From contig NC_092350.1 of assembly GCF_963676685.1 (NCBI RefSeq), positions 38,936,001 to 39,000,000 on the forward strand: a stretch of DNA of 64,000 nt, given 5' to 3'. Origin of the DNA: Mytilus edulis. Its lineage: Eukaryota. Below, piece by piece: positions 1,327 to 30,290 of this stretch. Numbering within the stretch: position 1 is the stretch's first letter; every line of letters starts with the position of its first letter. The notes under the pieces are model-generated. The model had not been told where the DNA came from. It saw only the letters and a program-made list of their open reading frames with translations, and did not search any database. Both the position numbers and the translations under genes were made by a program.

Positions 1327-3921
1327 TTATATGGTGTATTTTCTTTGCTTTTGCTTACAACACAAAAATGAATTCCAAATTCGTTTTTCCTGAACTTCGA
1401 TTAAAAACGTCAACAAACTTCCGGATAAAACTATGATACCCAAAAGCCAAAACCACTGACTGGGATTTTGTTCTACAAACTGACGCCATAATGTATTCCA
1501 TACCAGAGCTCCTGCATTTCCTCCTGCTCCAACTAACCCCGCAACAATGCCTACGTGAGAAGGCAGAACATACGGTACGATGGCAAATGTTGTTCCTTCG
1601 GACATCTGGACAAACATGCTGAAAAATATCATTACGGCAATAGACGTGGATATAGTAGACATCTGACTAAATATTATCAACATTATACCTTCACCTACTA
1701 AGCAGGTGAAATGAGCAACTAGACGGCCTGCAATACCTAAATATTTTCGCATTATGTCTGAGTAAATTCCTCCCATGGCCCTAGCAAAGAGATTCATTAA
1801 ACCAAACAATGATGCAATCAAACTTGCAGCATCTTGATCTAGGATACTACATTCATTTGTGTCCATCTCTTTAACTTCACTCGTCATTGTTGTGATTGTA
1901 ATGTTAGAGAATGAATTGCACTCTTCTACACAACCCTCCTTTTTAAAGTTGTACAGGAAATAAAGGTTCATGACGGTATTGACAGCAATTTCTATTCCAA
2001 AACACATCCCATACTGTATCACCAAAACTAATATAGTTATCACGGACAAAAATATGTTGCTTTGATTAGATATGTGTTTGTCATTGTTGTTCCGAATCTC
2101 TGATGATAAAGGCTCAAATTTCGTTCCGTCAATGTTTGTTTCCTTTACAGCTGAAAAAAAATACAGGTAGACATTTTTTATTGGTGGTAATTATTTATCA
2201 GTTGAACAAATATAACTATGGTGACGATGTGATGTCGAAAAGAACTTTTAAAATATACAGTGTACCATAAATCCAATTACTTCTAACTTTGTCATGTATC
2301 AAATTGGTTTAAAAATAAAAACACATTTGAATATAACTTTATACATGCTATGTTTTCAAAGCGCTTTTCTCGATTAATCTGTATCAGTAGCGCTTAAATC
2401 TACAAGTTAAATCCAAAAATATATACTTTACCTTTATTTGCATTCTTGTCTTTATCTGAGATGTGCTCGAATCCTTGGTTGTCGACTCCTTGCTTTTGAT
2501 TTGTTTTGTCTACAGAACATGTTGGTGCTGTTGGCAATAGCCGATTGTCCCAATGTCCTTGTGGACAATCATCAGATGTGAAAATTATAGAAATACCTGA
2601 AAAACAGTGAGTATTCTATTTTCATGTTGATAGTACTTTACAAATAACATATTGCTTCGACAAACTTCGGTTATAGGCACCTAGTTTATGAACATAAAAA
2701 CAGATTTTAAAGATTGACAGATATTTTATTTTAAGTATCGTAATTGTAATATGAGTCCGGATTCAAATACAAATTCTCAACATTTGGCATTGTGTACCAA
2801 AAAAGGAGGCAAATTATAGCTGAGAGTGTCGGCGTGTTGCTGTGTCATTTTGTCTGATCATTCATAAATTTATTATAGGTAGTCATGTATACCTTGATAG
2901 CACGAAAACCTTTAGTCAAAAGTAATCGGAGATTAAAAAAATAACAATATGAGAGAACACTATTTGAATAATAAAGGCAACAGTAGTATACCACTGTTCG
3001 AAATTCATAAATCGATTGGGAAAAACACTATAAAAGTAAATTTAAGCAACTATAAGTCACCGTTTGTTTTTCAACAGTTGACAACATTAAATACCAGTTG
3101 TTCATACAAACGCTCCCTTCCACTTGCGTGTATACTATAAAAAAATATATATGATGCTATAGGAAACCAAAATAAAACATCATAAAAGAGGTTTATGTGA
3201 GTATAATTGATTTGGTAAAGATATCATCAATCTATGTTTTGTTTAAAAAAATCATATTGATTTTTAAAATTTTTGACGTACCTGTTAATACACAAATTAC
3301 TGATGGAACGACGACTGCTAATTTCCATGCCAGAAATTCGTCTGCTCCTATAACTTTCATCAACTGAAATAATCCTGGCATCAATATGAATGTGAATCCT
3401 CCCCCTAAATTACCCCACCCACCAGCTATGGCATTAGCTGTTCCAACAATCTTCGAATTAAACATGGCTGAAGTCCAGAATTGACAAGGAACAAACGTTC
3501 CACCTAATATTCCAACAAAAAAACGTAAAACGATAAGCCCCGTACCAGTTTTTATTACGCCTGCTAGTGCCATTGGTATAGCACCTGTAATCAAAAGGCT
3601 ACACATTATTTTTCGAGGTCCAAACTTGTCACACATTGGTCCAATTATCACTCGAACTGCAATTGTAGCGGCAACACTAGCAATTCCAGAGTTAGCAAGA
3701 TCTGTTTTAGATAATTCCAGCTCTTTTCTTATAGTGGGGAGAAGAGGTTGAATACCAAACCATGACGTGAACGCAACAAAGAAACAAAACCATGACGCAT
3801 GGAAGCTTCGCATATGTGGACGAGCAATGCTGAATAATCTAAATTGTTTTGCTTTGCCAAGATCATCTACTTCTACCTTTTTGGCTTGAATTTTCCTCAT
3901 AATATTTGTACAACACGACAT
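1327..3921 (-). CDS. NRT2: Nitrate/nitrite porter (NNP/NRT2 family, MFS), paralogue A; 3 coding exons, ~542 aa
   Basis: Exons 3921-3282 (640 nt), 2596-2432 (165 nt) and 2150-1327 (824 nt) join through GT-AG phase-1 introns into 1629 nt of open frame. Motifs: FRLFSIARPHMRSFH..W N-terminus, TM2 Arg (AATIAVRVIIGPMCDKFGPRK), nitrate signature GTANAIAGGWGNLGGG, DDCPQG after TM6, TM8 Arg (FGLMNLFARAMGG), second signature GIVAGLVGAGGNAG. An acceptor AG at 3940-3939 implies an upstream 5'UTR exon. Confidence 0.93.
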
Positions 3922-5119
3922 CGTTTTTTGAGTATAATCTGAAAATTAGAAGCATTGGTAGTATTATAGAAGTTATTTAAAGATACTAGGCTTACAATTT
4001 ATTTTTTCGCTAGACTCGCGCGTCGTCTGCATATCAATTGTCAGTAGTGCTTGAGGAGTTGGAAAGTTGGATATATTATAGACGGTATAGACAGGGTAGC
4101 TTTATGTTCTAATTGCATATGAGTATTCTATGTTAGAGTTATCAGATCAAATTTTGTTGATAGATAGTACAGTCTGTAGTGTCTATAGTCAACCTATCGT
4201 TTCTGTCTATGCGTCACAAATATTGGTAACACAAAAACAGCGTATACCCTAAGAACTGCAGATTTAATAGAAGAACTCCTAATGAGATTTTAGATCTATT
4301 TGTCTTATTCTTATTTTCTGTTTTAATTGATTTTTGTTAAGTTAATTGGATCCTCTTTTTAAAAACAATAACGTACATTACAATTATCGGAATGACGGAA
4401 ATTTTTTATTTGGAAAAGGGGCTTGCATTTAAGTTCTGACAGACGGGTTTTTTTTTTGTCATTTGGCCTCTTTGTTTCCAGTTTTGGTGTATCAGCTTTA
4501 ATCCGTTATGTATATACCTCTCTTGGTTTGTTTCACATTTTTTGCATCCAGTGACCATTTATAGATAACTGCATTATATGTTTTTTTATAACTATTATTG
4601 AACACCGAACGGTGTATACTAGTAGTTGTTTACATCTTTGCCTTTAGTTTTTAGTTATTAGTTGTCACATATCATCTCATATTATTTCGGTTATTATACA
4701 CCTTTGCTTTCAGATATTCGATTTTTTTATTGAAAGAAATTCAGCAAAGCGCTTTGGACGCATGAAGTGTTTAAATTTCTTTTTTGGATTTTTGATCAAG
4801 CAATGTGTCATGTAGACTTCGGTTGATATGTAGTGTTTTAACTATATAGATGTGGTATGAGTGTCAATGAGATACCAATTAAAAAAAAGTTAAACCATTA
4901 GGGTCAAAGTACGGTCTTCCAAACGGAACACAGCGACCAGCAAGCTATAAAGGGCCCCTAAATGACTAGTGTAAATAAACTCATCATATATACCAGGATT
5001 AAATTTTGTATTTACACCAGACGCCTGTTTCGTCTACAATAGATTCATCAGTGACGCTCGCTTCCAAAAAAGTTAAAAAGACCAAATAAAGTACGAATTT
5101 GAAGAGCTTTGATGGCCAA

Positions 5120-5700
5120 AGGAGTAGGTTCAGTAAGACCCCTTTTTGGCCTCAAAATATAGCAGTTTTACAAAAGTATGAAAATGTAATCTTTAAGCTA
5201 TTTACTGAAAAGTAGAATGCTTCTGCTACATAAATATGGGATATTTTTTGACAATACAATGCACATATATCGGATGCTAGCATCATTAAGTCATGCTAAA
5301 TTACTGAAATCTTCACAATTTGAGCATTTTAGTTAAATTTTCGACGGTTTCCGTCTAAAATGAAAGTGGCCGCATTCGTGTTCATTCATAATATTGAAAT
5401 GTAAGTTGTATTTAATGATAATTAATAACATATATAAAGGTTGAGGATGAACACGGATGCGGCCACTTTCAATTTTGACAAAAACCATCTGAAAAGTGAC
5501 GTTTTTTGGCATATTTGATAGATTTTTCATATTTAAGCTTGAATCTGAGCGTTTTTAATAACTTAATTAGTTAAAATCTTTTACATAAACTAATTGAATC
5601 AATTTGAATAAACATTCCAGTGTTTAAAAAGTGTCCAACATCTTTCGTTCGATGAACTTGAAATTTGAGGCCAAAATCGGCCCTTACCGGACCTACTCTT
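5120..5700. mobile_element. Non-autonomous DNA transposon/MITE nested inside another dispersed repeat
   Basis: Imperfect TIRs ggagtaggttcagtaag / cttaccggacctact, plus an internal inverted pair at 5357-5386 and 5445-5476. It interrupts the dispersed repeat aaactcatcatagataccagg...ccaaa|ttcctaaa...tacagctaagg (4975-5745), related copies of which occur at ~17366, ~20951 and ~24343. Confidence 0.7.
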
Positions 5701-8700
5701 TTCCTAAATGTTTTTCCAAATACAGCTAAGGTTATCTGTTCCTGACGTAAAACAGTTCAATACGGTATTTTTTATCCCTGATATGGTCACTGTTTTATAA
5801 GTGACAACATAAAGGGTTTGTTTGGAAGAAAATAAAATATATCTCATCAACATTCATTCTTCTTAATGTAATTTGTTGATGTATTCCAATGACTGCCTTG
5901 TTAAATAATATTTGAGGTACCATTTTTTCTGCGTACATGCATGATGTACTGCCTTTTTTCTAGACTTAACGTTACACAGTGCGTGTTCATTAATCCCTGA
6001 AACTTTCGTCATAATAATGTAATCGTATTTTACATAGGCCATTTTCGACAAAGTATAGCATCTCATTGTAAAGAATTATTCAAGGCGCAATGTCAATGGC
6101 AGAGCTTATATATCCGTTTTACTCATCTGACTTTAATAGAAAATAAGAAAAAGACACATATCCCTAAATATAAGCTGAGTAAATAATACAAAAATTGAGA
6201 GGGAAAAGTCAAATAATCAGAAAAATTAATCTCATCCGGCTTCGAATGCATGAATAAAAAATGCATACATATTGGGAGGTAAATTCAATTATTACATGAA
6301 GTTACCTCAATATTATTTTTTCATCCTTTTCAAAATGTATACAGGATATCTGGTCACAAATATCACATTGTGGTAATGGGAATGAACTTTTTTGTGTGAG
6401 TTTTTGATTGTCATATGACAGACTGTCAAGCGGGTCTTTGATATTTGAAAAAAATACAAATGTACGGTTGATTTACACATATGCTTATAAAATATAATGA
6501 TATATAATTCTGCGTCAAAAATTCGTAAATGGTGACCCCGCTTGCAAGTAACGTTATTAAACGAACATAACTTGAAACAGAAAAAGAGACTACACCCACT
6601 TCGAGCTTGATATGCATTTTGTGCTAAAAAGTATTCTGTATAAGTCTCATAACATTTTGTTGAGGCAAACAAACGTCATAACGGAAAGCAATTTTGGGAC
6701 GTAGGTACGAGTGAACAAATGGACATACAAGAATAACACTTAATACCCTCTCCGGTGACGGCTGAGCCATATAAAAATAACACAGATTAATTGGTATGCG
6801 TTAAGAAACAGCCAATAAAATATAAGTAGGAGGTGCACAATGCAAATTTTGTACAAGAATATTTTTTCAAAGTGACAATCCAGTCAATGGTTTGATAGGT
6901 TGTGGACAAAAATGTCTACTCTAAATAGGATCACCCTCAGTTTTGTAGGGGTTCGTTCTGTTCAGTCTTGTGTTTTGTGTACACGTTGTTTTATGCTGGT
7001 CTCTTCACGTTTAAAAGCCATGGTGTTGTCAGTTTATTTTCAACTAATGAGTTTGAATGTCCTTTTGGTATCTTTCGCCTCTCCTTTTCTACTCGTATCA
7101 AATAAAAGTTAATAACAAATTCGGATTTATATTTTTAGTAAGGAACGCAATCAAAATGAATAATCGTAACAAAATTAATTTAAAAATGCAATTTCTTGTA
7201 TAAAGTATAAAGACGGCTTGTCGTATTGAATTATTATGTCGTTTGTCAATTGATTTTGTTTTCATCGATGAATTTTTTAGCGATGAAAAAAATTGACGCG
7301 TTCTGATAAATGCTTTGTAGGAGTAATTTTTATATCGCTTATCGTAGTATAACAACTTATTTTTAGTCGAGCAAACATTGTAAGTTGTATCGCAAACATG
7401 AATGTTTCATGCTCTTGTATTAGTATACGTAATATTTGTTTGCTTATTACAATGTTAATCTTTCGTGTGTAAGTTAACAATTGATGTATAATAAGGTCGC
7501 ATTGGTTACTTTGAGATAAAAAAAAAAAAAAAAGGATATTTTTCATAAAAAAAACTCATACTTATATATAGGAAATTGTATAGTATTGTATCAACATGTG
7601 ATTAAAAATTTGTGATATCCTTTGTACTTTCTATAGAAGATTTTGTATTTTGAAAAAAGTAAGGATTTATCAACTTAAGTTAATATGGCCGTATGTTCAA
7701 CACAAATTTTACTAAGCATCCAGACACACCTGTGCACAAATGAAACTCATTTATTTTGGTTTGCGCTATTTTCTGCAGACTGGGGACGGATTTGTAACAC
7801 TTCTTCAGAGCGAAAATTGAAATTATCTCCAGGAGATAGTACAGTCGATAGTGATTTACCGACCGACCAGCGACCTTACTGTGAAAAACATTTCGTATAA
7901 TGTATTTTTGAACGATTATTCAGTATCGGTAATTAGTAAAATCACAAAAATACTGAACTCCAAGGGAAATTCAAAAAGGAAGTTCCGAACCAAATGGCAA
8001 AATAAAAAGCACAAACGCATCAAACGAATGGAAAACAACTGTCATATTCCTGACTTTGTACAAGTGTTTTCTCGTGCAGAAAATAGTGGATTAAACTTAT
8101 TTTATTGCTAACTAAACCTCTCGTTAATTTCAAACCTAATTGATTAAGATTCTTGAAACGAAATTCTATAGTTTTTTATCAGCCCGAAATACATGTCACG
8201 GACTTTTAAAACTAAAGGTTATAAAAGACGTACTATTATGTAGTAGAGAATTGATAAGAAGTAGTGGATTCGTAAACGATAATCAACGAGCGACTTTAGT
8301 CTGAATTTCATGAAAATAATTTCGTCGTTTTTATTGTCTAATAGCTGGAACTGACTAGATCCACACGGTTCACATTTATATTTAACTTATACAAATATTA
8401 TTTGACTTAAATATGTTGTTATCTTCCCTTTTTATTACCAGATTTTGTATTTGCAAATAATTATTTCATTCAACGTTGAATCATTACAAATAATTTATAT
8501 TGATTAGATTTTAGTATTAATAATTCATTCAAAAAGACATATTATCAATATATGGATTTTTTAAAATCTTTTTTGGAAAGTTAAAAAAAATTAATTACCA
8601 ACATTAAAAAACCTTTAATATTTACATATATAGTAATCAGCAACCTAATGAGTAAATTAATGGGAGATATCTCCCATTTGATTGAATTAACAATACACAT

Positions 8701-9240
8701 TCAAAATGACTTAAAATTTAAATGAAGTGTAAAATTTACAATAACACCGCTTCACTAGACACCAGTCGATGATAAAATAGATACAACGATTGGCCTAAAT
8801 TAAAAAATAATATATAAATTTTGTTTATATTTCATTTTTACTATAAAGTTGACGATTTTGTTTCTGGTTTCACCGTCAAGGAAGTAGTTTTACAGTCGTA
8901 GCTAATCACACTTTATTCACATAAGAGTCAGTTAAATTTTGACGTATATTTGGACCATTTATAATCAATCAAAGAAAAACTAAGTGATCATAGTATGATA
9001 TCATTGTAACCATAAAAACAAAAGTAAGCATTTGCTATGATGAAAAGGGAAAGGCCTTGTATCTTAAAAGTGATAACTGTAAACTAATGTGTAAATGGAT
9101 GTTTATTTTATCAAGGAATTCCTTAATTCTATAGTGTTTATATATTTTATTAGATAACAAAAAAGACAGAAATACAGTATATTGACATGCATTGACAGAT
9201 ATACGCTATGAGAGTGGTATTTCAATAATTATTTATATCA

Positions 9241-9320
9241 GCTCTCGTGGTCTAGTGGTATCGTGCATAGGCTACAGACTTTATGGTCGAAAATACGCGC
9301 GAGTTCGAACCTTTCATTAG
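9241..9320 (+). mobile_element. tRNA-like sequence (SINE head or tRNA pseudogene)
   Basis: Pol III A-box tggtctagtgg and B-box gagttcgaacc are present, but the acceptor stem does not close cleanly. Confidence 0.5.
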
Positions 9321-10444
9321 TCATTCGTTTTTGAGAGGATAAAATATCGTACGTTAAAAGTTATGATAGAAGTTATCTTAAGTTAACATGATGGTCAGTG
9401 GATTCTTGAAAAATAATCAAGTTATTGCCTACTCATTTATTATTAATAATACTGCTTGTGCTTAAAATTTCGTCATATTTTATACTCAACATCCCTACGC
9501 AGTTGCTTTCATCTCTATTTTTCTAGTTTGTAAAAATATTTTTAAAAAGCAGCATGTTTTATTGCGTTTTTCGATTTCAGGTAAATGACACAGAGTATTA
9601 CCAATATAGCCGTATATAAGTTTATAAATGTTTTGTTAATCTGAGTATACACCATCTTGTATAATGGTATGTTTGTGGTCTAGTAGAACTTCATCTTGGC
9701 ACAGGAGTTAGTGTCAATCCCTAATGCATTATACTTACTAGGTTAGGAAGATCGTGACATGTTATTCCCTTTTTAAGACGTAATATGAAATATGTTGAAT
9801 GCAACAAAATCAGGACAAGACTATCGCAACGTAAAAAACGAATGGCAAATTGTTATAGCTTGCTGATAAAAGATATTTCGAAATGGATTTCTACCGGTCT
9901 AAACATGTATCAAAATCTTTATAATCCTGAAACTATGTTTATTAAAAAAAATAAGTGGAACGTCATGTGTTCCAGATCTGTCGATGCTGGGATTTACGAG
10001 CTTTGTTATTTCTTGTAAAATATCGTCTGTCTACTGTGTTCAATTTCTTTTGAATGTAAATATGGTTTTGGTATAAAAAAAAAAAACAAAAAAAAACAAC
10101 TATTTACTCTTCCGGAGCACCTGAGATCACCCCAGTTCTTGGTGTGGTTCATATTGCTTCGTCTGAAGTTTTCTTTATTGTTTCTTGTGTATTTGTATTT
10201 GTCTGTTTGTCTTTTTCTTTTTTAGCCATGGCGTTATCAGTTTATTTTCGATCTATGTGTTTGATTGTCCCTCTTGTATCTTTCGCCTCTCTTTTACCAA
10301 CTTTTTTACTATTCCTACTTTTATACATATATGCACAATAAATGTGAAAAACAATTTATGTTTTACAAGGTGCGTCTTAAATGCCAAAAATGATTCATAA
10401 CATATACTATTCTTAGTTCTAGTAATAGTATTATCATTTATGTA

Positions 10445-10609
10445 NNNNNNNNNNNNNNNNNNNNNNNNNNNNNNNNNNNNNNNNNNNNNNNNNNNNNNNN
10501 NNNNNNNNNNNNNNNNNNNNNNNNNNNNNNNNNNNNNNNNNNNNNNNNNNNNNNNNNNNNNNNNNNNNNNNNNNNNNNNNNNNNNNNNNNNNNNNNNNNN
10601 NNNNNNNNN
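10445..10609. other. Assembly gap (165 N)
   Basis: Run of n characters between the two NRT2 paralogues. Confidence 1.
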
Positions 10610-13271
10610 GTTTTGGCTATTATTAATTTTTTTCTATTTTTTTATATAAAATATTTATGACTCACCTTGACAAAAATTGAAAGGAAATAGCAACAGGATT
10701 TACACCTCAAAATATTCAAACCAATAGCATGACCACAAATTGGTTTTTAGTAGAAAAATTGCTTGAAAATACGGATTTAAAACAAGTTATGCTTTCATAC
10801 ACACCAATTAAAGTTGTCTTTTTATATTTAAACAGAATAGTATAATTTTGATGTGGATAAAAAAATCAAAATGTGCAATGATTTGTGTATTTAAGGAGTG
10901 CAACATCCTGCTAAAGTGAAGAATTCTACAGCTCAATTTATATGTGGTTTAAGAGCGTTTGCTTTTGAAATGCTATATTACATTTTTCTCAATGATTTTA
11001 TTTCAAAAGTAGTATATATTGTATAAAATAAAATGTGAACATTCGCATGCTTGTTTTTTTTAAATATATTAAGCTTTCACAAATCTCGAAAAAATTGAGA
11101 TGTATGCTTTAAATTTGAGTCACCTTTATATCATTGTTTTTCTTTCAAGTCTTTTACAATCATGTTCAATTTACTCTAACAATTGTATGCCAAATCATCC
11201 TTATCACTTGTAACAGGAGTATGAAGTTGGATGTCCATAGTTTCACTGGAGGGTGTATTTTAGCAGTTTGCGACCCCCCTGGATATTAAGGTAGACAAAC
11301 TAACTATGTAATGTGAATACCCCAAAAAATTAGAATAAAATAGAAATATTTTATGCGTGATACAGGAGAGGAAAACCCAAGTATCTTTAAAACTGAAAAT
11401 ATCTTAAAAAGATATCTTAAAAGAAGATGTGCTATAATACCACAACAAGTGTTGCTCTCGAAAAAAATATTATGCTACTTACCGAATTAAAAAAAAATTT
11501 TTTTTACTTCTGGGCTTTTCGTTTTTTTGGAATGCCTAAATTGAATAATCCAAAAATCAATATATAAATAGACATCTAAAACGCACAAGAAACAATGTCT
11601 GAATCCTCGATAATGATTTAAAATGTTGTTTTTAAGACAGATATATCTATGATATATACCTTTTGTTGTTTGAAGTAACTCTCAGGCTGTTGAAATTGCT
11701 AACTTCGGATGGTTTCTGACCGTTTCGTCTTGTGATTCATAATATTTGGTACTGGTACATTTTGTATGGCTCTAACTCCCAGCGTTTCACTTCTATTTTT
11801 TTGTTTTGTCGGCTTTACATTGATATAAAAAGTTTTACTGCTGCGTATTGCCTTCGTTACTCCTATCCTCTAGTATTAATCGAAAGATATATTTGAGACA
11901 CTTTTCAATTCAAAGCTATGATAGATAACGAAAATGTAATGACAATAATTACTGAATCATCCAGATTGTATAATGTGTTCTCTAAGATAAATTTCATTTG
12001 TCCTGTCTAAAAGCACGTATAAACACCATGATCAAATATCTAAATTGATAATGCAAAAACATATAATACAAAACACACTTACTAACATATAAAAAAATAT
12101 TTGTATTTGTATTAAAGAAAAGGTTATACGAAAGTAGTGAATAAAGTATATATATATATATATATACCTTTATTATTTAACATTCCTTCAATGTCAAAAT
12201 TTACGAGGAAGTTATCTGACTATTCGAAAGGTAAATAAACATTGATTTGGTTATGTCATAAAACATGAAATGTAAGGTAAAAGGTAAGGTGAGTACGTGC
12301 ATTTCCATATTAAACAACTCTCGTGAAAGTTTTAAGATACCAAGTTATGCTACATATTATTTGCTTCGACACTTATATCATACCTGGGGATTTGAAAAAT
12401 GCCGTTTCAGCAAAATCTGTGATATCAGGTATCTCCGCTCTAATAAAGAGTTTTGTCAGGATAAACTTATTTTCTAGGAACAATGATAATAAGCTATAAA
12501 ATCAGGTTTAATGCACAATTTTCTACTTAAGAAAATGCCTGTACCAATTCAGTTATATGACAGTTGTTTTCAATTTATTGGTGTGTTTGAGCTTTTGATT
12601 TTGCCATTTGCGCAGGAACTTTCTGTTTGTAATATTCCTTGAAGTTCGGTGATTTTGTACTCTACTTTTTAGCAACACTCTTTCCAGTATGTCTTTCGAA
12701 TTGAAGGTTTGTGCGGTCTCATGCCGTTAGAACTCGTGTGATTTCTTAGTTTTTGTTTAAATTTTGATATCTGTTTATTCTGGAGGGATTCACACTATTT
12801 CAACTTGTGTTGCTTCTTTTAAAAATAAAAGTCACGTTAGTTTCGTGGCAAATTTGAGTGATCAAAACAAAGTTTTGTTTCAAATGACAACATAATCAAG
12901 TAAATATTAACATTTGTTATACATTATTCATAAAAACGCATTCTGCTTGTGTTCAACGGCAAAAAGGGGATATCGGTATTGTGTCCATTGAGGTGTTTAT
13001 GGAATGCAGCATATGTCTAACGAAAAGTGCTTATGCTTTTCATATTTAAGTATTATCTGTGGCCTCTAAAATGTTAGTTAGTCTAACACACCATTTCACA
13101 AACACCAAACTGACATGTTGTTTGAAACAAGCTTTCACTTCTAGTGAGCTAATATAAAAATTATCGGAGCACAATCGCATCAAAGTGATTACGATTGTAC
13201 AGAATAACCACTGATATTACGTCAGGAGATCTGAAAAGATTCTTAACAAATGAGCTCAATTTTCTATGATC

Positions 13272-13488
13272 AAAAAGTAAAATCACAAAAATACAGAACT
13301 CCGAGGAAAATTCAAAACGGAAAGTCTCTAATCAAATGGCAAAACCAAAAGCTCAAACACACCAAGCGAATGGAGACAAACTGTCATATTTCTGACTTAG
13401 AACAGGCATTTCTGGTGTAGAAATGGTGGATTAAACCTAGTTTTATAGCTAGCTAAACCTCTAACTAATATAACAGTCGCATCAAATT
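13272..13488 (+). repeat. Abundant dispersed repeat family (other copies at ~878-1016, 7936-8120, 12500-12670 (-), 17554-17680, 43740-43903 (-))
   Basis: Shared core aaaatcacaaaaatac(t/a)gaactccgaggaaaattcaaaacggaaagtc..aatcaaatggcaaaa...caactgtcatattcctgactt. Confidence 0.85.
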
Positions 13489-15173
13489 GGGCAATACAAG
13501 TGGGCTTAATAATGTTGTAATTTATAAGATGCATTCATCTGCCAGTATTGTTGAATGAAGGGATGGATACCTTCAACATATTATTGCAAATTTTTTTCAG
13601 TTTTAATTTATTAGTACTATAAATTTCAAGAGTCTCCACTCAAAATAAATTTATATTGATATGATAACTGTCATAATTTTACAAAGGAAAATAAAAATTC
13701 CATTCCAAAATGTATTGTATTCCAATATGAAATAGTCCGATGCAGACAGAGGGCATTTATAGTTAAGCATTATTTGTCTTTCTCTATATGATATAATTTT
13801 AACTGTATCGTTCTTTTCTTTCATTATCATTACACTCATGACAATACTTATCTAAGTTGTTTCCTGTACTACATCTACAATAAGTTGCCAAAATATGACT
13901 ATAAATCGTTTAATATAATGCTTCTTTATTTAGAAACTCTATTCAAAGATTTGCAAATCTTAACATCTAACAGAGTTCATGATACATGGCAAAGGGGACA
14001 TAATCTTCTTGCACCTGAAATGCATGGATGTAAATGCACACGACGGATCCATATTCGATGTATAGATGCTAATAAATATGCATACCAATCATAAATTATA
14101 TATGACCATAATATATTCTGCAATTAATCTTCTGAGACAACTTTAAATAGGTTATTGACGACATACCAAGGACATGAGTTTTCGGTTTATTTTCGTAACA
14201 ACATTTTGTTTCAGGAAACTCTGATTTAAATGACTACAGGAATATTTCAGCAAGTATGAGTGTATAAGTAGTTTTATTTGGGACTCTGAGTGTCGTTTAC
14301 AATAATGATTAAATTCACATAGAGATAGGCATTCTCTCGTTCTTAAAAAGTTGTGAAATTTTGTTTTGTTTTATTTTATCGATTAACTACATGCCTGTTT
14401 GAATTCAGTATGTAATATTTAATATGTCAAAAGAACATTGGTTTAAATTGTATTGGTTTGTTTTAGCATAAATATTGAACATAGATAGAACTATAGTATG
14501 TCCAATTTTTTATCTACCATAAGCACGACTTCTTGAAGATATGATATTTAGATGGAAATTGCAGTTACGAAGGAATAGTGAGAATATCTGTTTCCATTTT
14601 CGGTCCAAAGGACTTGCAATTTAATAATACAGTGTAATGTCGAATACCACCTTTGTTGTAGTGTCAAAAAGACAAAAGTTCATTTCTTATTAATCTCCGC
14701 AGCGTATGTGTGTCATCAAATGACTATCGGATCAGCTTTTTTAACTGATGAATAAAAACAGCAATTTTCGTAGTGGTACAGAAATACATGTAGAAGAGTA
14801 AAGGGTTCACGTCATAATATGAAAGTTTAATCAAATGCTTTTCTTGTATTTTATGTAGTAAGTGTTATTCGATGTGTATTTTATAAAACTTATGATATAA
14901 TCGAACTAATATTGTATTTATTATTCATATAATTCAATTGACAGATCATGATGCGAGTAATCATAAGTTTGTATGTCATCAATTTAAGAAAAGGTACTTT
15001 ACAATGATAAACTACATCGTTGTTTATTCTTAAAACCAATTTTAATACTTACTCAACACTTGTTTGAGTATATATTTTACACAATATATAGCTGCTTTTT
15101 TTTTTTTAGATAATAATGAATTAAAAAGGCAGTAGCGCCAAAAGATCTTTTCCGTCAAATAATGTTTTAAATC

Positions 15174-18100
15174 CTATAAGTTGTACTTCTTTTTCCGACG
15201 TTTACCGCAAACAAATACATCCCAGATCCGCTGATCTTGTACCTCAACTAAAAGCGTCAGTAAACTTCCGGATAAAACGGTTAATCCTAATAGCCAAAAC
15301 CACCTACTTGGATCCTCCTCCACTAACTGCCTCCATATTGTATTCCATATCAGAGCACCAGCGTTTCCACCTGCGCCCACTAATCCCGCTACAACACCAA
15401 TGTGTAATGGGAGGACATAAGGAACGATAGCATAAGTTGTCCCTTCGGACATTTGTACGAACACGCTGAAAAATATCATGGCAGCAATGGCATTGGGTAT
15501 AGTAGTCATAGTACTAAAGATAATCAGCATTGTACCCTCGCCTACAAGACAAGTGAAATGGGCTGTCAGACGACCCGCAATGCCTAAATGTTGACGCAAA
15601 ACATCAGAATAAATCCCACCCATTGCTCTAGCAAAGAGATTCATTAGACCAAATAAGGATGCAACCAAACTAGCTGTATCCTGATCAAGAATGCTGCATT
15701 CGTTAGATTCGTCCAGTCGGACAAGAATTGGTGTAGTCATGTTTGTTGTATTAAATTGATTATTGATATCGTTCAAACAGTCCTCCTTTTTAAATCTATA
15801 TAGAAAATAAAGGTTCATAACGGTATTGACAGCTATTTCTACTCCAAAACACATTCCGTACTGCATCACCAAAACCACCATCGTCACAGCTGCCCAAAAC
15901 TTACCAACTAGGCTGGTCGGCTCTTTATTTTCATCGATCTGTTCTATTGGAGACGTCTGTACTTCCAGTTTGTCTACATTTGTTTCCTTTTCGACTAAAA
16001 ATAAATGTCAGTTTGTATTTGAGTACTATGTAAATAAAAGCAACAGTAAGTTATTGTATGTAGTTAAAACAATTGTTAATTTCCTAATGCATGTAAAGCA
16101 AAACTTTGGTTAGCTTGCTTGCTTTGTTTGTATAATGTACAATCATATTAGGATAACTCCCAATTTAATTCAAATATTATATATACAGGTTAAACAATGC
16201 CTCTAAATATTGTTTAAAGATGTCAATCTTATTTAGAAAGCTTACATAAACAATAATACAAACAAAGCAAGCAAGCCAACCAAAGTTTTACTTTGCAAGC
16301 ATTAAGAAATCAGCTGTAAATAATTTAAAAAAACAACTTAACAATACAAATAAAAAGCTATAACATTTGACTATTCCAGAGGAAGACCGAACCAATAGAT
16401 AACTATAACATGTATAATTCACTGGTTTAGAATATATCTTCTGAACTGGTATGATTCTGGTGTGTGTTTGCATCGATTTTATGTCTATTTGTTATAAACA
16501 GCCTCGATTAGCTCGTGATAGTGCGTTCACCTCGAGTGCGAGATGTTGTGGGTTCGACCCCCGGCCGGCTCAAACCACAAAGACTTTGAAATTGGTATTT
16601 GCCGATTATCCACTAAGCACGCGCATTACGGAGCACGAGAACAGACTGATAGGCTCTGAGTTAGAAAAATGTGTCCGGATAAGGTGACATGTTTCCCTGA
16701 GGAATATTGCCTTGTGAGCTAGCACGTTAAATATCCGGCTCAATGTTCCGGTCAAGCACAAAGCAGAGAAAATATTCATATTACATTTACATGGGCTGGT
16801 CCTGAATACAAGTATGCATATCAATTTATCGCTGTACGTAAGTATCCATTCATCTTTATCATATTCACCAATTTGTAATACTAGTAAATGATAATGACAA
16901 AGTCATTTGAGATAATTAGCAACCTCAAGTATATCTGAAGGACTTGAAATAGAGTTCCCCAAAAAGGGCAAGCTTCCCATTATATGCTAGGGATCATTAC
17001 TTTTAAAGTTTCACATAACTCTACAAACGAGATATCTGACAAATGGAGACGTTTAGCATGCAAATAAAACACATTCAAATCAAAATAAATTTCCATATCT
17101 CCGCAGCAACATTTTTTCATGGTCATTTTATGGTATTCCGTCATGACAGGAACATCGTGTTATAGCTTGCAAAAAACCCTAATTCAAAGCAAACAGAATT
17201 TCATTATCTCCGCAACAACATTTCATATGCATTTCATGGTATTCCGATTCTCGTGCTTTACTTGCAAAATTTAAAAAAGTAACACGAATAGTAAGCGTCG
17301 GGCAAAAGCCAGGCAAAATGACTGACAGTTATAAGACAGAATAACAATATTCTTAATTTCAAAACACGCGCGTTTCGTTTACAAAAGACTCATAAATGAC
17401 GCCGAAATCACAAAAATTAAAAGGCCAAATGAAGTACCAATTTGAATATTGTTTAGGACCCCAGAAATACAGCTTTTGTCATATATTTAACGTGGGGACG
17501 AACATCCTTGGTATTTTGAAAAATAATTAAAGTTTTGTAAAAAGTTATATCTCAAAAATACTAAACTCCGAGGAAAATTCAAAACAGAAAGTCCCTAATC
17601 AAATGGCTAAATTTAAAGCTCAAACACAACGAATGGACAAGAACTGTCATATTCCTGACTTAGTACAGGCATTTTCTTATTTTCAAATTAGGTAAACAGT
17701 GAATGTATAATTATGACAACGTCAATGATAATTCATGCACTGTTGAAATCCATTATTATTTTTATCAAATCTTTTTATTTATCAAAAGGTGTTATCGTAT
17801 ATATTATATAATTTCTGTTTACTAGATCAGGTTTTTCTAAGGCATCATTCAAATTTAAAGACAGGTCTCTGTTTAAAATAAACTTAGACTTGAGTGATTG
17901 TTATTTGTTTAAAGTCTGGTAACACTAACTGCATACAGAATGAGGACAAGGAGAAGTCAAACAATAGATCTAATAGCAAAGTTCTGCATAGTGCGTTCAC
18001 CTTACCTTCTAAAAACGCGGGACTTTGTTTTTGAAACTACGTCATCGATAATAATAGAAATATTATAGTGTGGAAAAATAAAACATCAACGAATAACTTC

Positions 18101-20365
18101 GGTTAATTCTTATTTTCATCAAACCTTAAAAATCAAAGTATATGATGTTCTACGTGATAATTTATGTAATTTCAAGGATTTATTGTTACTGACAGTATAT
18201 TTTCCCGACAACTAAGTACATGTTCAATTGAAAGCAGAAAGATTAGTAACTTGGTTGCCCGTATTTGCTAGTCTGGAAGTTATATATTTATCAATACCGA
18301 AATATGCAATCCTTAATGACCTGACAATAGTATCGTAACTAGAGAGCATTATGACTTTGCATGTATAGACGAGCAATGCTGAATAATCTAAATTATTTTG
18401 CTTTTCCAAGATTATATTCTTTTATGTGTATGGCTTTGATTTTCCAAAAATCTTTGGAACACCGGGCATTTTCCCTCTCAAAGCCTGTTGTATATGGTCA
18501 TTTCGGGGAAAAAATATTTTATATTTTACTTTTATATATTTTATATTTTTTCTATATCTTACCTTCCTTTGGCATCTCTACTGTCTTTGAGTCATTTTTA
18601 TATCCTAAATTCGCAACACCTTGTGTTTCATTTTTTTTCTTTTCTGGTAATTTTGCAGATGGTGGCAATGTACGGTTTTCCCAAAGTCCTTGTGGACAAT
18701 CATCAGAAGTGAACAGTATTAAAATCCCTGGAAAAAACCACACACACTGTTTTAGTGGAAAGATCTACGTTCCATTTACTAATAGTTTTGTACATTTACA
18801 AATTGATAGTTTTGCACATGCTTCTCATGTTGAAATCGAGAGTAACGTCAAAATGTCTATAATTAATTTTTTTTTGTCTACCAACTGGTCTTACATTTTT
18901 CATGCACTTCCAGAATGAGTACCAATTATACGTTGTCTTGTTTTTTGTGGTGTTTTTCTTATTGTTTTATTGTTGTTGCATTGTCTTTAGTTTTGTATTC
19001 TTATAGACTGCTGTTGGTCTTTTGTCGATCTTCGTTTTATGCCATGGCGTTGTCAGTTTATTTACGACTTACGATTTTCATATTATTTTGGTATCTCCAG
19101 CCTCTCTTTTTGAGTAAGTTAATTTTTTCAAAACTGAACAGTAAACAAACTGGGAAGACAGCTGAAAAAGTATGCTTACAAATTGAAAAAGAGGGAACTT
19201 TTCATGCATTTTCGTACATGTCCGATGTCACAATGCTCATGTTATTACGCCGAGGTTAGAGCCTATTACTTTTTTATTTTAAATGAAAAAACTTACGTTT
19301 TGTGGTAAACTCTACTATCAGATTATAGTCTTTATATCCCGTTGATACGATAATATGTATGACATAAAAATATTAAATTAACTGTGAACGAGGTCCGGTA
19401 TCGATATACCTCTTTAGGTCAATAGTTATCAAAGGTACCAGGATTATAATTTAGTACGCCAGTCTGTTTTTCCTTTTCATTTTTAGCCATAGCGTTGTCA
19501 TTCTATTTTCTTTTAAAGAGCATTTAGGACCCAAAATTCCAAAAAACATGATTCTTTACAAATCAGATTGTTTGAAATATACTCAATGATAACTTTACAA
19601 AATAGTCAAAGAAATCATATGTGTTGTTATTGTTTTACGGAATAGTGCGTTCACCCGTTCAAACTTCATTCGCCTATGCAAACATGTATATAAAACTACA
19701 CTATATCATAATTTGTAGAGCCTACCTATGAGAACACAGATAACGGAAGGTATGACGACTGCTATCTTCCATGCCAGGAATTCGTCTGCTCCAAATACTT
19801 CCATTAACCGAAATAATCCCGGCATCAAAATAAAAGTAAATCCTCCCCCTAGATTTCCCCATCCGGCAGCTATTGCGTTAGCAGTTCCTACTATCTTCGA
19901 ACTAAACATTGCAGTTGTCCAGAACTGACACGGAACGAATGTTCCACCTAATATTCCAACGAATAATCGCAATATAATCAGACCTGTGCCACTTTTAATT
20001 AAGCCCGCTAGTGCCATTGGTACAGCACCAGTAATTAGAAGACAAGACATTGTTTTTCGTGGTCCATATTTGTCACACATCGGTCCGATAATTACCCTAA
20101 CAGCTACGGTAGCAGCAACACTAGCAATGCCTGAGTTAGCAAGGTCTGTTTTTGATAACTTGAGTTCTTTTCTTATTGTGGGGAGTAATGGTTGTAACCC
20201 AAACCATGAAGTGAAAGCGATGAAAAAACAAAACCACGACGAATGGAAACTTCGCATGTATGGACGAGCAATGCTGAATAATCTGAATTGTTTTGCTTTT
20301 CCAAGATCATCTTCCTCAATATGTTTGGCTTGTATTTTCCCGAGAACTTTGGTACAGCAAGGCAT
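15174..20365 (-). CDS. NRT2: Nitrate/nitrite porter (NNP/NRT2 family, MFS), paralogue B; 3 coding exons, ~541 aa
   Basis: Exons 20365-19726 (640 nt), 18727-18563 (165 nt) and 15994-15174 (821 nt) give 1626 nt in frame. Intron positions and phases match paralogue A. Motifs GTANAIAAGWGNLGGG, FGLMNLFARAMGG and GVVAGLVGAGGNAG are present. Confidence 0.93.
16085..16304. mobile_element. Foldback/MITE-like element; a related copy lies at ~38110-38400
   Basis: The ~55-bp imperfect inverted repeats are taatgcatgtaaagcaaaactttggttagcttgcttgctttgtttgtat and atacaaacaaagcaagcaagccaaccaaagttttactttgcaagcatta. Confidence 0.65.
16500..16775 (+). mobile_element. tRNA-derived SINE in NRT2-B intron 2
   Basis: tRNA-like head with B-box gggttcgacccc, followed by a core (gactttgaaattggtatttgc...cactaagcacgc) resembling mollusc Meta-type SINEs. 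Confidence 0.65.
18355..18486 (-). pseudogene. Degenerate fragment of NRT2 coding exon 1 (acceptor, ATG and first ~35 codons) inside intron 2 of paralogue B
   Basis: Aligns by eye to 20250-20385 (gacgagcaatgctgaataatct..attg/attattttgcttttccaagat). It translates KIKAIHIKEYNLGKAK*FRLFSIARLYMQS versus KIQAKHIEEDDLGKAKQFRLFSIARPYMRS, with an in-frame stop and a frameshift after the ATG. Confidence 0.85.
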
Positions 20366-22951
20366 TATTCCCGCTCAAAGTCTGTAACATAAATTTAAGA
20401 AATTATGTAAATTATAGTAAGAATCTGAAACAGTCTAGTAAGATTTTGTATGTATACCTGCTGATTATAACGCACTGGTTAATCCGTTATGATCATCAAG
20501 CAGAAAGTTATCGGTCACGATCTTTGTTGAAAAATGAAAATTTTGAGAGAAAATACATTTATTTGTAATAATTGTCATCTAAATGTAGAAAATTGTGTGT
20601 TTCATCTTTGTATTTTTTACAACAACAAAATACTTCTGTCTGATTTAAATTGTGTTCAACTTTGCCATGAGAGCGGAGATAACTCAGATATTATTTTTTT
20701 TAAAGAATAACATATGTAGCAAGGAAACGAGGCCCGTTACCCCAATTTTTATTTTTATTTTGATAAAGCATATTATACGAGCTATCTTTTCATATTTCAT
20801 CTAAAAATAATATCGGTTAGTTTTCTTTCTTTTTAATACACAAAATTGTTTTTTTCATGAACTTTCCTTACAATGTTTGACAATTTTGCCAAACATATAG
20901 CCTAGTGTGACCCATACTTTTTATTATATTTTTGAATAAAACATAATATAAATAGTTATCAAAGGTACCAGGCTTATAATTTAATACTCCAGACACGCGT
21001 TTCGTCTACATAAGTCTCATCAAAACAGTTAAAAAGCCAAACAAATACAAAATTAAAGAGCAATGATGACCCCAAATTCCAAATAGGTGTGCCAAATACT
21101 GCTAAGGTTATCTATGCCTGAGTTACGAAAATCCTTAGTATTTTGAATAATTCATACATTTGCAAACAGTAAATTTTAAACAAATTGACCAAATAATTGA
21201 TATTCATGTCAACATCGAAGTGTGGTCTACTGAGATGCTGATACCCTCGGGGAAGAAACGCCCACCAGTAGTGGCATCGACTTAGTTGTATAAATAGTTA
21301 TCAAAGATACCAGGCTTAAAATTTAATTCGCAAGACGCTCGTTTTGTCAACATATAAACTACATTTTGGGAAATTATCAAAAAATATCTATCTTTTGATT
21401 GCAAAATACATTTTTATGATACAGAGGGTGAAAGCCATTTTGTATGTGTTAATTTTATTTGCGACTGTTTAATATTCCTGCATGTCTACTGTGAAATTAG
21501 ACACAAATAGCTTTCATCATTTCTGAAATTGAATCTAGAATCCGTAGTATGAAAATCTAGATATTCATTGTTAACCCTGTTGCACTGCTATCATAACTAA
21601 TTTATTTCATAAAAAGCACTTGTCATTTTGCGGTGTAGAATTCCCATTTTATTTACGCATTTATCGTACGGTACTAAATATATATCAGGTAACAGGATAC
21701 AAAAACGAACACTTTTATTTTTTCATTTGTTAAATGCAGGCGATTTGATATGTTTTTAATCATTAAGATTAATTCGATAGGTAGAAAAAGAAAAGAAAAA
21801 AAGGACCATAAATCTAAACCACCAACAAATATCGAAACGTCACTATAGAGTAAAAAAATAGGAGGCTATAAAATATCTGTTAAAAGTACTTACAATGGGG
21901 TTTCTTGTCTTAATTTTGTTTAAATTTCAACAATGAATAAGAAGAAATTAATATTAGTAAATAGGGTATGGAAGAAGTTGAGAGGTTGCCGGTGGATTTC
22001 AAAAATATTTCCCACTTAGATTATCGAGTCTGTCCAGTGTATTGTGTATTATCGATATTATCAACATCGCCATGTCTACTATATCGTGTCATTATTGTGT
22101 CAGTATCTATAGTAGAAATTTCGATGATGATAGAAGCGAGTCAACATCGTGTTCATATTGGGTACCAAGTCTATAACTTTGTGCTTACATCACCGACCGT
22201 GCTAGGACTTTATAACCAGTCAAGGTCGTTAAAAACGTCCATAACATCACGATGTTGTAAATAGTGAATCAAAATTTTGTTAATATTGTTAACCGATTCA
22301 TACTTTTCTGTTTGCATCGTAGACATAACAATGTTGATAATATCGTGTCAATATCGTATTTATATTGTATTTGAGTTTTTACCGTTATTTTATATCGTTC
22401 ACATTGTCAACATCGCGATGATGAAAATATCGTGTCAAATCGTTTATGTTGAAAACCGAGTCAATACGCCTTTGTTAAAATTACATTGTCGTCAACATCG
22501 CGATTTTGATAATATCGAATGAACCTTGTGTTTATATTGTATACCGAGACTTTGTGTTAACATCGTTCATATCGTCACCATCGTTTCAGCATCGTTTTTA
22601 TAATGAAAACTGAGTCTATGTGTTTACACCGTTTGCTTCCTCAAGATCGCGATGTTAACAATATTATTTCAACATCGTGTTTATATTGTATACAGAGACT
22701 ATACCAAATAACAACTCAATTTTGTCATTTTATGGGGGATTTTTTGCTGTTTTTATCTCTTCTACATTTCTCTTTAACTCGTAGCAACTTAGAGCCTAAC
22801 AAATGATATACATGATGTTGACACGATATCAGATATCGTTAACACAGCAATGTAAACGACGTAAACACGATATTGGGATAAAATACGCAACCGACGGTCT
22901 TTATCAATGGATGAAACTATACAAAATATGTCAAGCTATAATTTACCGTAC

Positions 22952-28157: not shown

Positions 28158-30290
28158 ATGGAGTCCTTTGATGCATTGAAAAGCGTTCTGAATTCATTTA
28201 CAGGGAAAGTCTGTACTAAAAAGGATATCAATACGGCACTTGAGCTGCTGGGTAAATCCATCAACGACTATACCAAAACTCTGGAAAAAAAGAGAATACT
28301 ACGTTATATCGACGTGAATGATGTGGATCCAAAATGGACAGTCATTGGGTCTGGTCATTTTGGATACGTATACGCCAGCAAATATGGGGGATCGAAGGTT
28401 GCTATCAAAATATTCAAAGACGAATCAAAATCAAAGATTCGAGAGGGAAAGATACTGCAGGACTTGAGCCATGAAAATATCATAGCATTTCGAGGAATTG
28501 GATACATCTCACAATCAAAAGCGAAAGAAAAAAAATTACAAGTAAGTGATTCAAATAATGAGGAAATGATGTTTCTAGTCATGGAGTATATAGATCAAAA
28601 CCTGTTAAAGTACGTAGATGGGATGAGAGTTCATGAAAGAAAAGGACTGCGTTACGATATGGTTTGGAGTATTGGACAGCAGATTATTAGTGCATTAAAC
28701 TATCTTCACAATTTGAACATTGCTCATAGAGATCTAAAACCGGATAACATTCTTTTGGAGGTAGGACCGAGAAGAATCGTCGTTAAGCTGGCAGACTTTG
28801 GGCTTGCAACTCACGGCAATGAAATAAACACAAATCCTCCACGTGATGAAAGAATGCCTTCATGTATCACTGGGTCCAGAGCCAGTTCAAGCGTTGCAAA
28901 TATACGATGGGGTGCACCTGAACTATTTGAAGAAACCCTAGGTCGGGAACGGTCATTAGAAGATTATAAAAAATCGGATATATATTGCTTTGGGAATGTA
29001 CTTACATTCATGTTGACCGGAGAACGACCTTATAGCAAAATGTCAACCAACGCACTATATGACACTGAGGATCATACGGATAACATATCAACTCCAGATT
29101 TACCGAAAACTCTATCTGGTCATTTGATGGATGCGATCATTGAGTGCCACAAAGAGATTCCAAAAGAAAGACCGAAAGCTTCAAACGTTTTGAAAGATTT
29201 CTTCAGTTTGGAAAATAATCCGTATCTTTTGCAGACTAACTCGGAAACTGAAGCAGATTTTTTCAGTTGTGGATTCATGGAGAAGACAGATATATTTGTT
29301 GCCGACTCATGTACTAACAGAGAGGCGTCACAGATGGGTTTCAATGATTCTGGAATCAGACCTACAGGATACGACCATTTGGATTTAAATTGTGTCATTG
29401 AAGTAAAACATGCGCCATATCGAGACAGACCAGATGAATGGGATCTTAATAAAGAATATACGGATAATTTGGACGAATTTATAACAATGGCAAAAAAGAA
29501 AGTAATAGATAACAATCCTACTGTAGCTTTGAAGGAGTTGACATTTGCAAGACCCGGTGAAGACGAAAATCAACTTATTGAATTCAAATTTAAAGAGTCT
29601 GATTATATTCACCACAGGGCTATGAGAAAAATATGGATTGATTTTTCAAATCAGCAAAAGGCTGAAGAACTTCCCTCGAAATCAAATGTACATCCATATT
29701 TTAGTAACACGTTTGGTCTTCATGTTGCAGTCCTTACAGATGAAGGTCCTGACAAACCACAGAAATTTTTATTTCCTCGTCGTGCTCAAAGAGAGGGAAT
29801 GGCTGCACCAGGGAAATTCACTTGTGGTGCCGTCGAAAGTGCATCGAAACCAGACTACAATTTACACAACGGTAAAACGTGTGTTGATTTAGTAAATACC
29901 GCAGCGCGTGGACTGAAAGAGGAACTCGGACTAGAACTCTCAGGAAGTGACTTAGATGCTATTTGCTTAACCACGGTTTACCTAAAATTTGACACCCATG
30001 AATGGGGACTATGTGGTTTTGTCGATTTGAAAGATAAAAGAATAGACCCAAAGCATAGAATAAGTGCCAATAGTTTGAAAGATATATTTAGCACTGGACC
30101 AAAAGATAAATTTGAACACCAAACGCTAAAGTTTATAGATTTTGATTTAAAAACAATGGTTGAATTCGTTTTCAATAACCATGAAGACTTTGCAAGCTCT
30201 GCAAAACTTGTAGTTGTGAAAGTTTTGCAAGCCTTCTATGGGTGGCAACGAGTACAACAAGAGTTTGAAATTATGCGCCATGGGAAATAG
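28158..30290 (+). CDS. Protein kinase (TKL-like/Ser-Thr) fused to a C-terminal Nudix-like domain; coding region in a single exon, 710 aa
   Basis: Kinase motifs GSGHFG, VAIK, alphaC Glu (IREGKIL), HRDLKPDN, DFG, RWGAPE, SDIYCFG and KERP lie at aa ~57-350. The C-terminal half has FGLHVAVLTD..FLFPRR..PGKFTCGAVE...AARGLKEELGL, a Nudix-box-like pattern. A splice acceptor (tttttag) at ~28090 lies just upstream of the ATG. Confidence 0.9.
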   Translation: MESFDALKSVLNSFTGKVCTKKDINTALELLGKSINDYTKTLEKKRILRYIDVNDVDPKWTVIGSGHFGYVYASKYGGSKVAIKIFKDESKSKIREGKILQDLSHENIIAFRGIGYISQSKAKEKKLQVSDSNNEEMMFLVMEYIDQNLLKYVDGMRVHERKGLRYDMVWSIGQQIISALNYLHNLNIAHRDLKPDNILLEVGPRRIVVKLADFGLATHGNEINTNPPRDERMPSCITGSRASSSVANIRWGAPELFEETLGRERSLEDYKKSDIYCFGNVLTFMLTGERPYSKMSTNALYDTEDHTDNISTPDLPKTLSGHLMDAIIECHKEIPKERPKASNVLKDFFSLENNPYLLQTNSETEADFFSCGFMEKTDIFVADSCTNREASQMGFNDSGIRPTGYDHLDLNCVIEVKHAPYRDRPDEWDLNKEYTDNLDEFITMAKKKVIDNNPTVALKELTFARPGEDENQLIEFKFKESDYIHHRAMRKIWIDFSNQQKAEELPSKSNVHPYFSNTFGLHVAVLTDEGPDKPQKFLFPRRAQREGMAAPGKFTCGAVESASKPDYNLHNGKTCVDLVNTAARGLKEELGLELSGSDLDAICLTTVYLKFDTHEWGLCGFVDLKDKRIDPKHRISANSLKDIFSTGPKDKFEHQTLKFIDFDLKTMVEFVFNNHEDFASSAKLVVVKVLQAFYGWQRVQQEFEIMRHGK

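Follow-up and report, generated by a model that had tools for sequence, protein, structure and literature searches.

NRT2-type genes in the mussel Mytilus edulis: a tandem pair within a six-gene family and its probable role in nitrate/nitrite transport

A 64,000-nucleotide stretch of the Mytilus edulis genome (C7:38936001-39000000, that is, positions 38,936,001 to 39,000,000 of NC_092350.1 in assembly GCF_963676685.1), referred to below as the window, contains two neighboring minus-strand genes, gene A (1327-3921) and gene B (15174-20365), each with three coding exons. Both are native and belong to a family of six genes; on their sequence features, they are probably functional members of the NNP family (TC 2.A.1.8) on its eukaryotic NRT2 branch and would act as single-component nitrate/nitrite carriers in a host that does not assimilate nitrate. 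Animals are the textbook non-assimilators of nitrate, which makes the conservation of an NRT2 family in bivalves and annelids genuinely odd. The discovery of animal NRT2 has already been made, and orthologues from Mytilus are already held in public databases; the new contribution here is modest and consists of the six-gene, two-cluster organization in mytilids, the evidence of constraint, and the observation that the largest family so far is kept by a presumably non-photosymbiotic host.

Previous Reports of Animal NRT2

NRT2 homologues in molluscs (bivalves), annelids, and rotifers were reported by Uchida et al. (20 Nov 2025, bioRxiv 10.1101/2025.11.20.689417) with copy numbers of 0-5; the animal NRT2 described there retains both substrate arginines, 12 transmembrane (TM) helices, and a long loop, comes without NAR2, and in Tridacna crocea is expressed specifically in gill and mantle at levels that drop on bleaching. 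The text of this preprint does not mention Mytilus, the sole mussel named being a Bathymodiolus homologue. The pathway survey of Ocana-Pallares et al. 2019 (PMC6400420), in which Metazoa appear as a collapsed clade, is cited in the preprint as concluding that animals are without NRT2, and no further papers on animal NRT2 beyond the preprint were found in the literature searched.

The public Mytilus entries comprise a M. galloprovincialis protein named "MFS transporter, NNP family, nitrate/nitrite transporter," proteins of M. coruscus and M. edulis named "NRT," and M. trossulus LOC134684385 and M. californianus LOC127704762, which are likewise 1:1 orthologues. These entries differ from the present genes in being automatic annotation only, with no publication on them found in the literature searched. 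An earlier assessment of the window made from its letters, hereafter the sequence-only reading, had presented the pair as a little-studied animal transport system; such a system is already known, since animal NRT2 is the subject of the preprint and a Mytilus orthologue already bears the name of an NNP transporter.

Gene Models of the Tandem Pair

The open reading frame listing of the window holds four long minus-strand frames where the sequence-only reading had placed them, and the middle exons were located by means of the conserved FTSDDCPQG stretch in a three-frame scan. In gene A, coding exon 1 (3282-3921, minus strand) begins with the ATG at 3921 and comprises 213 codons plus one base, which encode TM1-6, the arginine R90, and the motif GWGNLGGG; coding exon 2 (2432-2596, minus strand; 165 nucleotides, phase 1/1) covers the last part of TM6, the DDCPQG motif, and the first part of the central loop; and coding exon 3 (1327-2150, minus strand, stop codon included) encodes TM7-12, R392 within FARAMGG, and GAGGNAG. 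Gene B is likewise composed of coding exon 1 at 19726-20365 (ATG at 20365), coding exon 2 at 18563-18727 (165 nucleotides, with phases as in gene A), and coding exon 3 at 15174-15994 (stop codon included), all on the minus strand, the last of which carries R391 and GAGGNAG. At all junctions an exon ending in G is followed by an intron running from GT to CAG or TAG, with canonical donors and acceptors; both introns of each gene are in phase 1, and they interrupt the same codons in genes A and B. The joined frames are open over 542 amino acids in gene A and 541 amino acids in gene B, and the resulting proteins are 71% identical, so that the earlier description of a pair of intact three-exon genes holds when "three" is understood as the number of coding exons. 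The joined proteins were analyzed locally (frame, length, motif positions, tree, dN/dS, and tblastn against the window), and the database and fold searches were run with single exons or public orthologues as queries.

The partner of gene A is M. trossulus LOC134684385 (P0152), a protein of 542 amino acids that equals the gene A model in length. The exons of gene A tile this protein over both junctions, exon 2 aligning across the two, with identities of 95%, 78%, and 93% (92.7% for exon 3) in alignment A1. The partner of gene B is P0155, which with 541 amino acids again equals the model in length, is 91.2% identical to coding exon 3, and is known only from a Logan contig of 1,947 nucleotides; another protein, P0003, lies on a Logan contig of 2,027 nucleotides. 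Both P0155 and P0003 read straight through the two junctions. Since their contigs are hardly longer than the coding sequence, these contigs most likely represent spliced transcripts from a close relative, and the exon model thereby gains indirect support.

A polypyrimidine tract with a CAG is found 15-20 nucleotides upstream of both ATGs (approximately 3925-3945 and 20370-20390, minus strand). This acceptor-like CAG suggests a further, unannotated and non-coding 5' exon in genes A and B, each of which would thus probably comprise four exons. The same signal is kept in a decayed copy of the 5' edge of coding exon 1 that lies on the minus strand at 18324-18505, inside intron 2 of gene B; this fragment carries an acceptor-like ACAG and the ATG region, is approximately 82% identical to 20249-20385 and to 3806-3896 of gene A, and has a frame that stays open for only some 15 codons. 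A search of 1-22000 for tandem repeats was negative, so the fragment occurs once rather than as part of a minisatellite.

Native Origin on the Mussel Chromosome

Genes A and B are native to an animal chromosome, because contig C7 measures 93 Mb (in an assembly of 1.37 Gb), a host repeat is embedded in an intron, and a metazoan AKT1S1 exon is a neighbor. The interspersed repeat, approximately 145 nucleotides in length, occupies 17514-17687 within intron 2 of gene B and recurs in the window as five further copies (874-1017, 7906-8072, 12528-12679, 13272-13411, and 43753-43865); at least 4,380 first-look candidates were counted on contigs C1-C14 and the small contig C77, with 83-90% identity among the 39 that were scored. 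The copy at 43753-43865 adjoins the exon for the C-terminal domain of PRAS (AKT1S1; 43198-43314, minus strand; PF15798, 37.6 bits, over the cut-off), which lies 23 kb from the NRT2 gene pair. This bears out the earlier statement that the introns share repeats with the AKT1S1 region, and with it the argument against algal or fungal contamination.

Contamination by, or a mis-join of, algal, fungal, or protist DNA might be suspected because the family is unusual for animals and because one assembly gap lies between genes A and B. Such a source is contradicted by the length of the contig, the interspersed host repeat inside the intron, the nearby AKT1S1 exon, a G+C content of the gene region (31-34%) within the 27-37% of the window, and the occurrence of orthologues in the assemblies of at least five Mytilus species and four other bivalve genera; it is therefore rejected and effectively refuted, with a probability close to nil. 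The gap itself (165 N at 10445-10609, the only N run) is intergenic, at a distance of 6.5 kb from the ATG of gene A and 4.6 kb from the stop codon of gene B; no exon crosses or abuts it, and a tblastn search of both proteins against the whole window returned no NRT2-like fragment near it. The reading frames are thus unaffected; the scaffold join matters only for the precise distance between genes A and B and for their being neighbors.

Assignment to the NRT2 Branch of the NNP Family

With the exon-1 pieces as queries, Pfam returned MFS_1 only. The NCBIfam model TIGR00886 (NarK family nitrate/nitrite MFS transporter) matches exon 1 over profile positions 1-182 in gene A (E = 1.4e-56) and 1-183 in gene B (2.7e-56), and it matches exon 3 over positions 258-368 (1.4e-23 in gene A and 8.8e-25 in gene B); the scores of 192 bits for exon 1 and 84 bits for exon 3 compare with at most 36 bits for the next family. 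Full-length public orthologues reach E values of 1e-89 to 1e-93 against the same model, which leads the next family by more than 230 bits.

The motifs point in the same direction. The TM2 motif VRVIIG supplies R90 in both proteins, and the TM8 motif FARAMGG supplies R392 in A and R391 in B; in alignment A1, every NRT2 has its arginine at these same two positions. The nitrate signatures of TM5 and TM11 read GWGNLGGG at residues 168-175 in both proteins and GAGGNAG at residues 476-482 in A and 475-481 in B. At the N-terminus, A and B share the motif FRLFSIARP(H/Y)MRSFH; the signatures and the N-terminal RPHMRxFHxSW are conserved throughout the aligned eukaryotic NRT2. The placement in the NNP/NRT2 family by the sequence-only reading, together with its observation of both signatures, both substrate arginines, and an NRT2-like N-terminus, is accordingly upheld by the motifs and by TIGR00886 as the best model.

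An AlphaFold2 model of the orthologue P0152 (pLDDT 76.9, pTM 0.77) has helices consistent with 12 TM segments, together with disordered loops at 237-296 and 345-366, and its top Foldseek matches are all MFS carriers; sialin structures are among the fold matches. PDB sequence searches with exon 1 and exon 3 returned nothing at 1e-5, and a PDB search with the family profile returned SLC37A4 only, weakly.

The loop between TM7 and TM8 (residues approximately 337-372 of A and B; window approximately 1845-1945 and 15690-15790) contains two conserved cysteines. A two-cysteine loop at this place is common to Corallochytrium, ichthyosporeans, oomycetes, and Hondaea and is missing in the glomeromycete and diatom rows; in bivalves, the loop is lengthened and carries the conserved cysteine pair along with N-x-S/T sequons. 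Standard NRT2 topology would have this loop face the outside, in which case the cysteine pair and the sequons would fit a glycosylated plasma-membrane protein.

Two observations concern the termini. An N-terminal Cys-Cys (MSCC/MPCC) is conserved in A, B, and their bivalve relatives, and also in Mercenaria and Owenia; at the other end, A, B, and the bivalve relatives have a cysteine, then a polybasic run, and a terminal Y-x-I/L/M. Speculatively, the two ends could be lipidation and sorting signals.

Several points weigh against the assignment of genes A and B as functional NNP carriers. The orthologues nearest to A and B score slightly below the curated TIGR00886 cut-off of 311.7 bits (300.8 bits for P0152 and 307.4 bits for P0155); P0153 scores 312.6 bits and two others score 303.9 and 298.7 bits, and Corallochytrium and a glomeromycete exceed the cut-off at 329 and 337 bits, respectively. 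The shortfall coincides with two long insertions, in the central loop and in the TM7-TM8 loop, and such insertions probably lower the scores of the orthologues. E. coli NarK and NarU are absent from the PDB sequence, profile, and Foldseek results, so that the fold evidence is that of a generic MFS carrier only; this outcome is neutral, speaking neither for nor against the NNP assignment. A search of the genome for NAR2 (PF16974) came up empty, as it did in the control genomes, so this negative is uninformative. The phylogenetic tree described below was built with neither a plant nor a bacterial outgroup. Moreover, we know of no animal NRT2 that has a transport assay.

Six-Gene Family and Purifying Selection

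A six-frame search with exon 1 found six NRT2 copies in the genome, arranged as two three-gene clusters. The first consists of genes A and B and a third copy located 88 kb from gene A (C7:38848523-38849158), all on the minus strand; the second lies on the plus strand of another contig within approximately 100 kb (C2:48363305-48458752). The four further genes correspond to loci L003-L006 and L008-L011. All six copies are built of three exons, with the exon-1 donor and the exon-2 acceptor at matching positions throughout. Their frames are open wherever examined, exon 2 (the loop exon) having been only partly modelled in copies 3-6. Identity between the two clusters amounts to 53-74% in per-exon matches, and each of the six copies has its own 1:1 Mytilus (or transcript-derived) partner at approximately 87-95% identity over exon-3-region matches.

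By the Nei-Gojobori method, dN/dS is 0.10 between A and B (dS 1.54, which is near saturation) and 0.13 between copies 4 and 5 (dN 0.045, dS 0.34, unsaturated), and across the copies dS ranges from 0.34 to 3 with dN/dS near 0.1. These ratios, a check that the sequence-only reading had proposed, indicate that the six-copy family is under purifying selection; A and B are read as sister paralogues from an old local duplication.

The same figures bear on two other explanations. If the copies were unexpressed relics, that is, young and still intact-looking pseudogenes, the decayed exon-1 fragment in intron 2 of gene B would be in keeping with them; however, the frames of the six copies (with the stated reservation for exon 2 of copies 3-6), the ratio near 0.1 over a dS of 0.34-3, the conserved lengths of the orthologous proteins, the transcript-like contigs in relatives, and the high expression of the Tridacna homologues in gill and mantle (bioRxiv 10.1101/2025.11.20.689417) all speak against such decay. 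Relic status is accordingly very improbable, and the pseudogene reading is rejected on the intact frames, the dN/dS of approximately 0.1, and the conserved lengths. Alternatively, the genes could be native and expressed and yet encode carriers that now serve a different small solute or anion (for example, chloride-like anions, formate, or nitrite alone) or act as sensors. The host is unable to assimilate nitrate, six paralogues at 53-74% identity between clusters leave room for functional divergence, and the bivalve proteins have lineage-specific loop insertions, all of which would favor a shift of this kind; it is nevertheless improbable, though less so than decay, in view of the two arginines and two signatures kept in A, B, and all aligned relatives and of the low dN/dS. 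Transport of nitrate or nitrite by genes under constraint remains the preferred explanation.

Relatives and Evolutionary Origin

At E ≤0.001, 2,015 representative proteins match exon 1; the names of the relatives were taken from a word-indexed search with the closest full-length match, of which the best 120 are listed. The Mytilus entries come from M. galloprovincialis, M. coruscus, M. edulis, M. trossulus, and M. californianus, and the other animal matches are from Mercenaria (five entries), Sinanodonta, Potamilus, Pinctada, and the annelid Owenia, so that the family is present in other invertebrates, as the sequence-only reading had asked to be checked. The next relatives belong to Corallochytrium, the labyrinthulid Hondaea, oomycetes, Glomeromycota, ichthyosporeans, Chromera, and diatoms. 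No plant sequences are among the best 120 relatives.

In a careful IQ-TREE run of 42 rows and 563 columns, in which plants and bacteria were not sampled and which does not bear on the root, the bivalves form one clade (99/99), which is joined by the annelid Owenia (100/99). Within it, A and B are sisters (100/99), gene A pairs with M. trossulus (100/99), and five of the mussel's own copies pair with their partners at a bootstrap of 100, with copy 5 and M. coruscus at 90/72. The animal clade is joined weakly to Mucoromycota/Glomeromycota (72/71), and the nearest relatives of the bivalve and Owenia clade are fungal, Corallochytrium, and labyrinthulid sequences. The earlier label "plant/algal-like" is therefore imprecise: the N-terminal motif is shared, but the closest sequences are from Owenia, followed by fungal, Corallochytrium, and labyrinthulid ones, and the central loop is of the fungal NrtA type. 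A recent transfer from plants or algae is a rejected reading.

The preprint likewise finds bivalves sister to Owenia, and its mollusc-annelid clade groups together with fungi, Corallochytrium, and Labyrinthulea; the origin it argues for is retention since the opisthokont ancestor, a fungus-to-rotifer transfer being a separate event (bioRxiv 10.1101/2025.11.20.689417). The choice between horizontal transfer and differential retention that the sequence-only reading had offered is thus the same one that the preprint considers. The case for transfer, in which some microbial eukaryote (labyrinthulid, fungus-like, or algal) would have donated the genes to a bivalve-annelid ancestor, as opposed to vertical retention within opisthokonts, draws on the patchy animal distribution (bivalves and Owenia only among the named animal matches listed), on weak deep nodes such as the join with fungi, and on the fungus-to-rotifer transfer of a separate clade inferred in the preprint. 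Transfer is nonetheless held to be somewhat unlikely, since the bivalve and annelid clade is strongly joined and roughly follows species relations, the introns, host repeats, and old paralogy speak for long residence in the genome, and retention is preferred by the preprint. This alternative concerns origin only and is compatible with nitrate/nitrite transport as the best explanation of function.

Nitrate Metabolism of the Host and Proposed Transport Mechanism

The NIR_SIR domain (PF01077) was not found in the genome, in a search in which 11 of the 14 control genomes were positive. A single Oxidored_molyb locus is present, with the order Cyt-b5, Oxidored_molyb, Mo-co_dimer, and stop, which is the order of sulfite oxidase; in eukaryotic nitrate reductase, the Mo domain comes first and is followed by an FAD/NAD tail. 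Because NIR_SIR is absent and the only molybdoenzyme locus is ordered as in sulfite oxidase, the host is read as possessing the carrier without an assimilatory nitrate/nitrite reductase, in agreement with what the sequence-only reading had said of animals.

The A and B proteins would be 12-helix MFS carriers of the rocker-switch type, in which nitrate or nitrite would be bound between the arginines of TM2 and TM8. Import would most likely be proton-coupled and single-component, as in fungal NrtA/CrnA, and without a NAR2 partner; this proposal is drawn from the long central loop of fungal type and from the statement in the supplement of the preprint (bioRxiv 10.1101/2025.11.20.689417) that long-central-loop carriers of the fungal NrtA type are NAR2-independent. 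In a host that has no assimilatory reductase, the carriers would move nitrate or nitrite across epithelia instead of delivering it to host assimilation, with seawater uptake, supply to associated microbes, and the feeding or clearing of a nitrate-nitrite-nitric oxide (NO) pool as possible purposes.

Among known systems, the closest is the animal NRT2 of the preprint (Tridacna crocea TriNRT2.1/2.2), which belongs to the same family, has bivalves sister to Owenia, and shares the 12 TM segments, the arginines, the signatures, the long central loop, a likewise non-assimilating host, and presumably also the lack of NAR2. The mussel differs in its six copies in two three-gene clusters, as compared with 0-5 copies, and in being presumably not photosymbiotic, such that the symbiont-supply model of the preprint is not obviously applicable. 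Fungal NrtA/CrnA (Aspergillus nidulans) and Ogataea Ynt1 resemble the mussel proteins in the arginines equivalent to R87/R368, the nitrate signatures, the long cytoplasmic TM6-TM7 loop, and, according to the preprint supplement, the absence of a NAR2 requirement; however, fungal NRT2 genes lie within nitrate-assimilation clusters alongside nitrate and nitrite reductases, which are absent in the mussel, and the mussel proteins have a longer TM7-TM8 loop with the cysteine pair and N-glycosylation sequons. The two-component high-affinity NRT2 of plants and green algae has the N-terminal RPHMRxFHxSW, the arginines, and the signatures in common with the mussel, whereas plant NRT2 has a short central loop, needs NAR2/NRT3, and is not among the best 120 mussel relatives. 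Sialin (SLC17A5), the characterized animal nitrate carrier, is also an MFS-fold anion carrier but belongs to another MFS family, with no sequence relation to NRT2 beyond the superfamily.

A presumably photosymbiont-free mussel that keeps six copies weakens an explanation based purely on symbiosis. It may tentatively be proposed, at somewhat less than even chances, that the six NRT2 paralogues constitute a nitrate/nitrite transport system of the host that is unrelated to the feeding of algae; candidate purposes, offered as a possibility, are the supply or clearance of the nitrate-nitrite-NO pool of gill and mantle under emersion hypoxia or the provisioning of surface microbes. If so, the photosymbiosis reading for giant clams would describe a secondary co-option of a wider lophotrochozoan physiology. 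For flux and knock-down work, the mussel offers a laboratory and aquaculture animal that is easy to keep.

Other Features of the Window

Two plus-strand frames elsewhere in the window were also observed. An intronless frame of 710 amino acids at 28158-30290 has an N-terminal half that is protein-kinase-like, and a frame at 54263-54634 consists of three repeats of approximately 41 amino acids (...KSKYMFRFSISKNPKNS.FVEIKQSLILDP...), which is probably a tandem DNA repeat of approximately 123 nucleotides rather than a gene.

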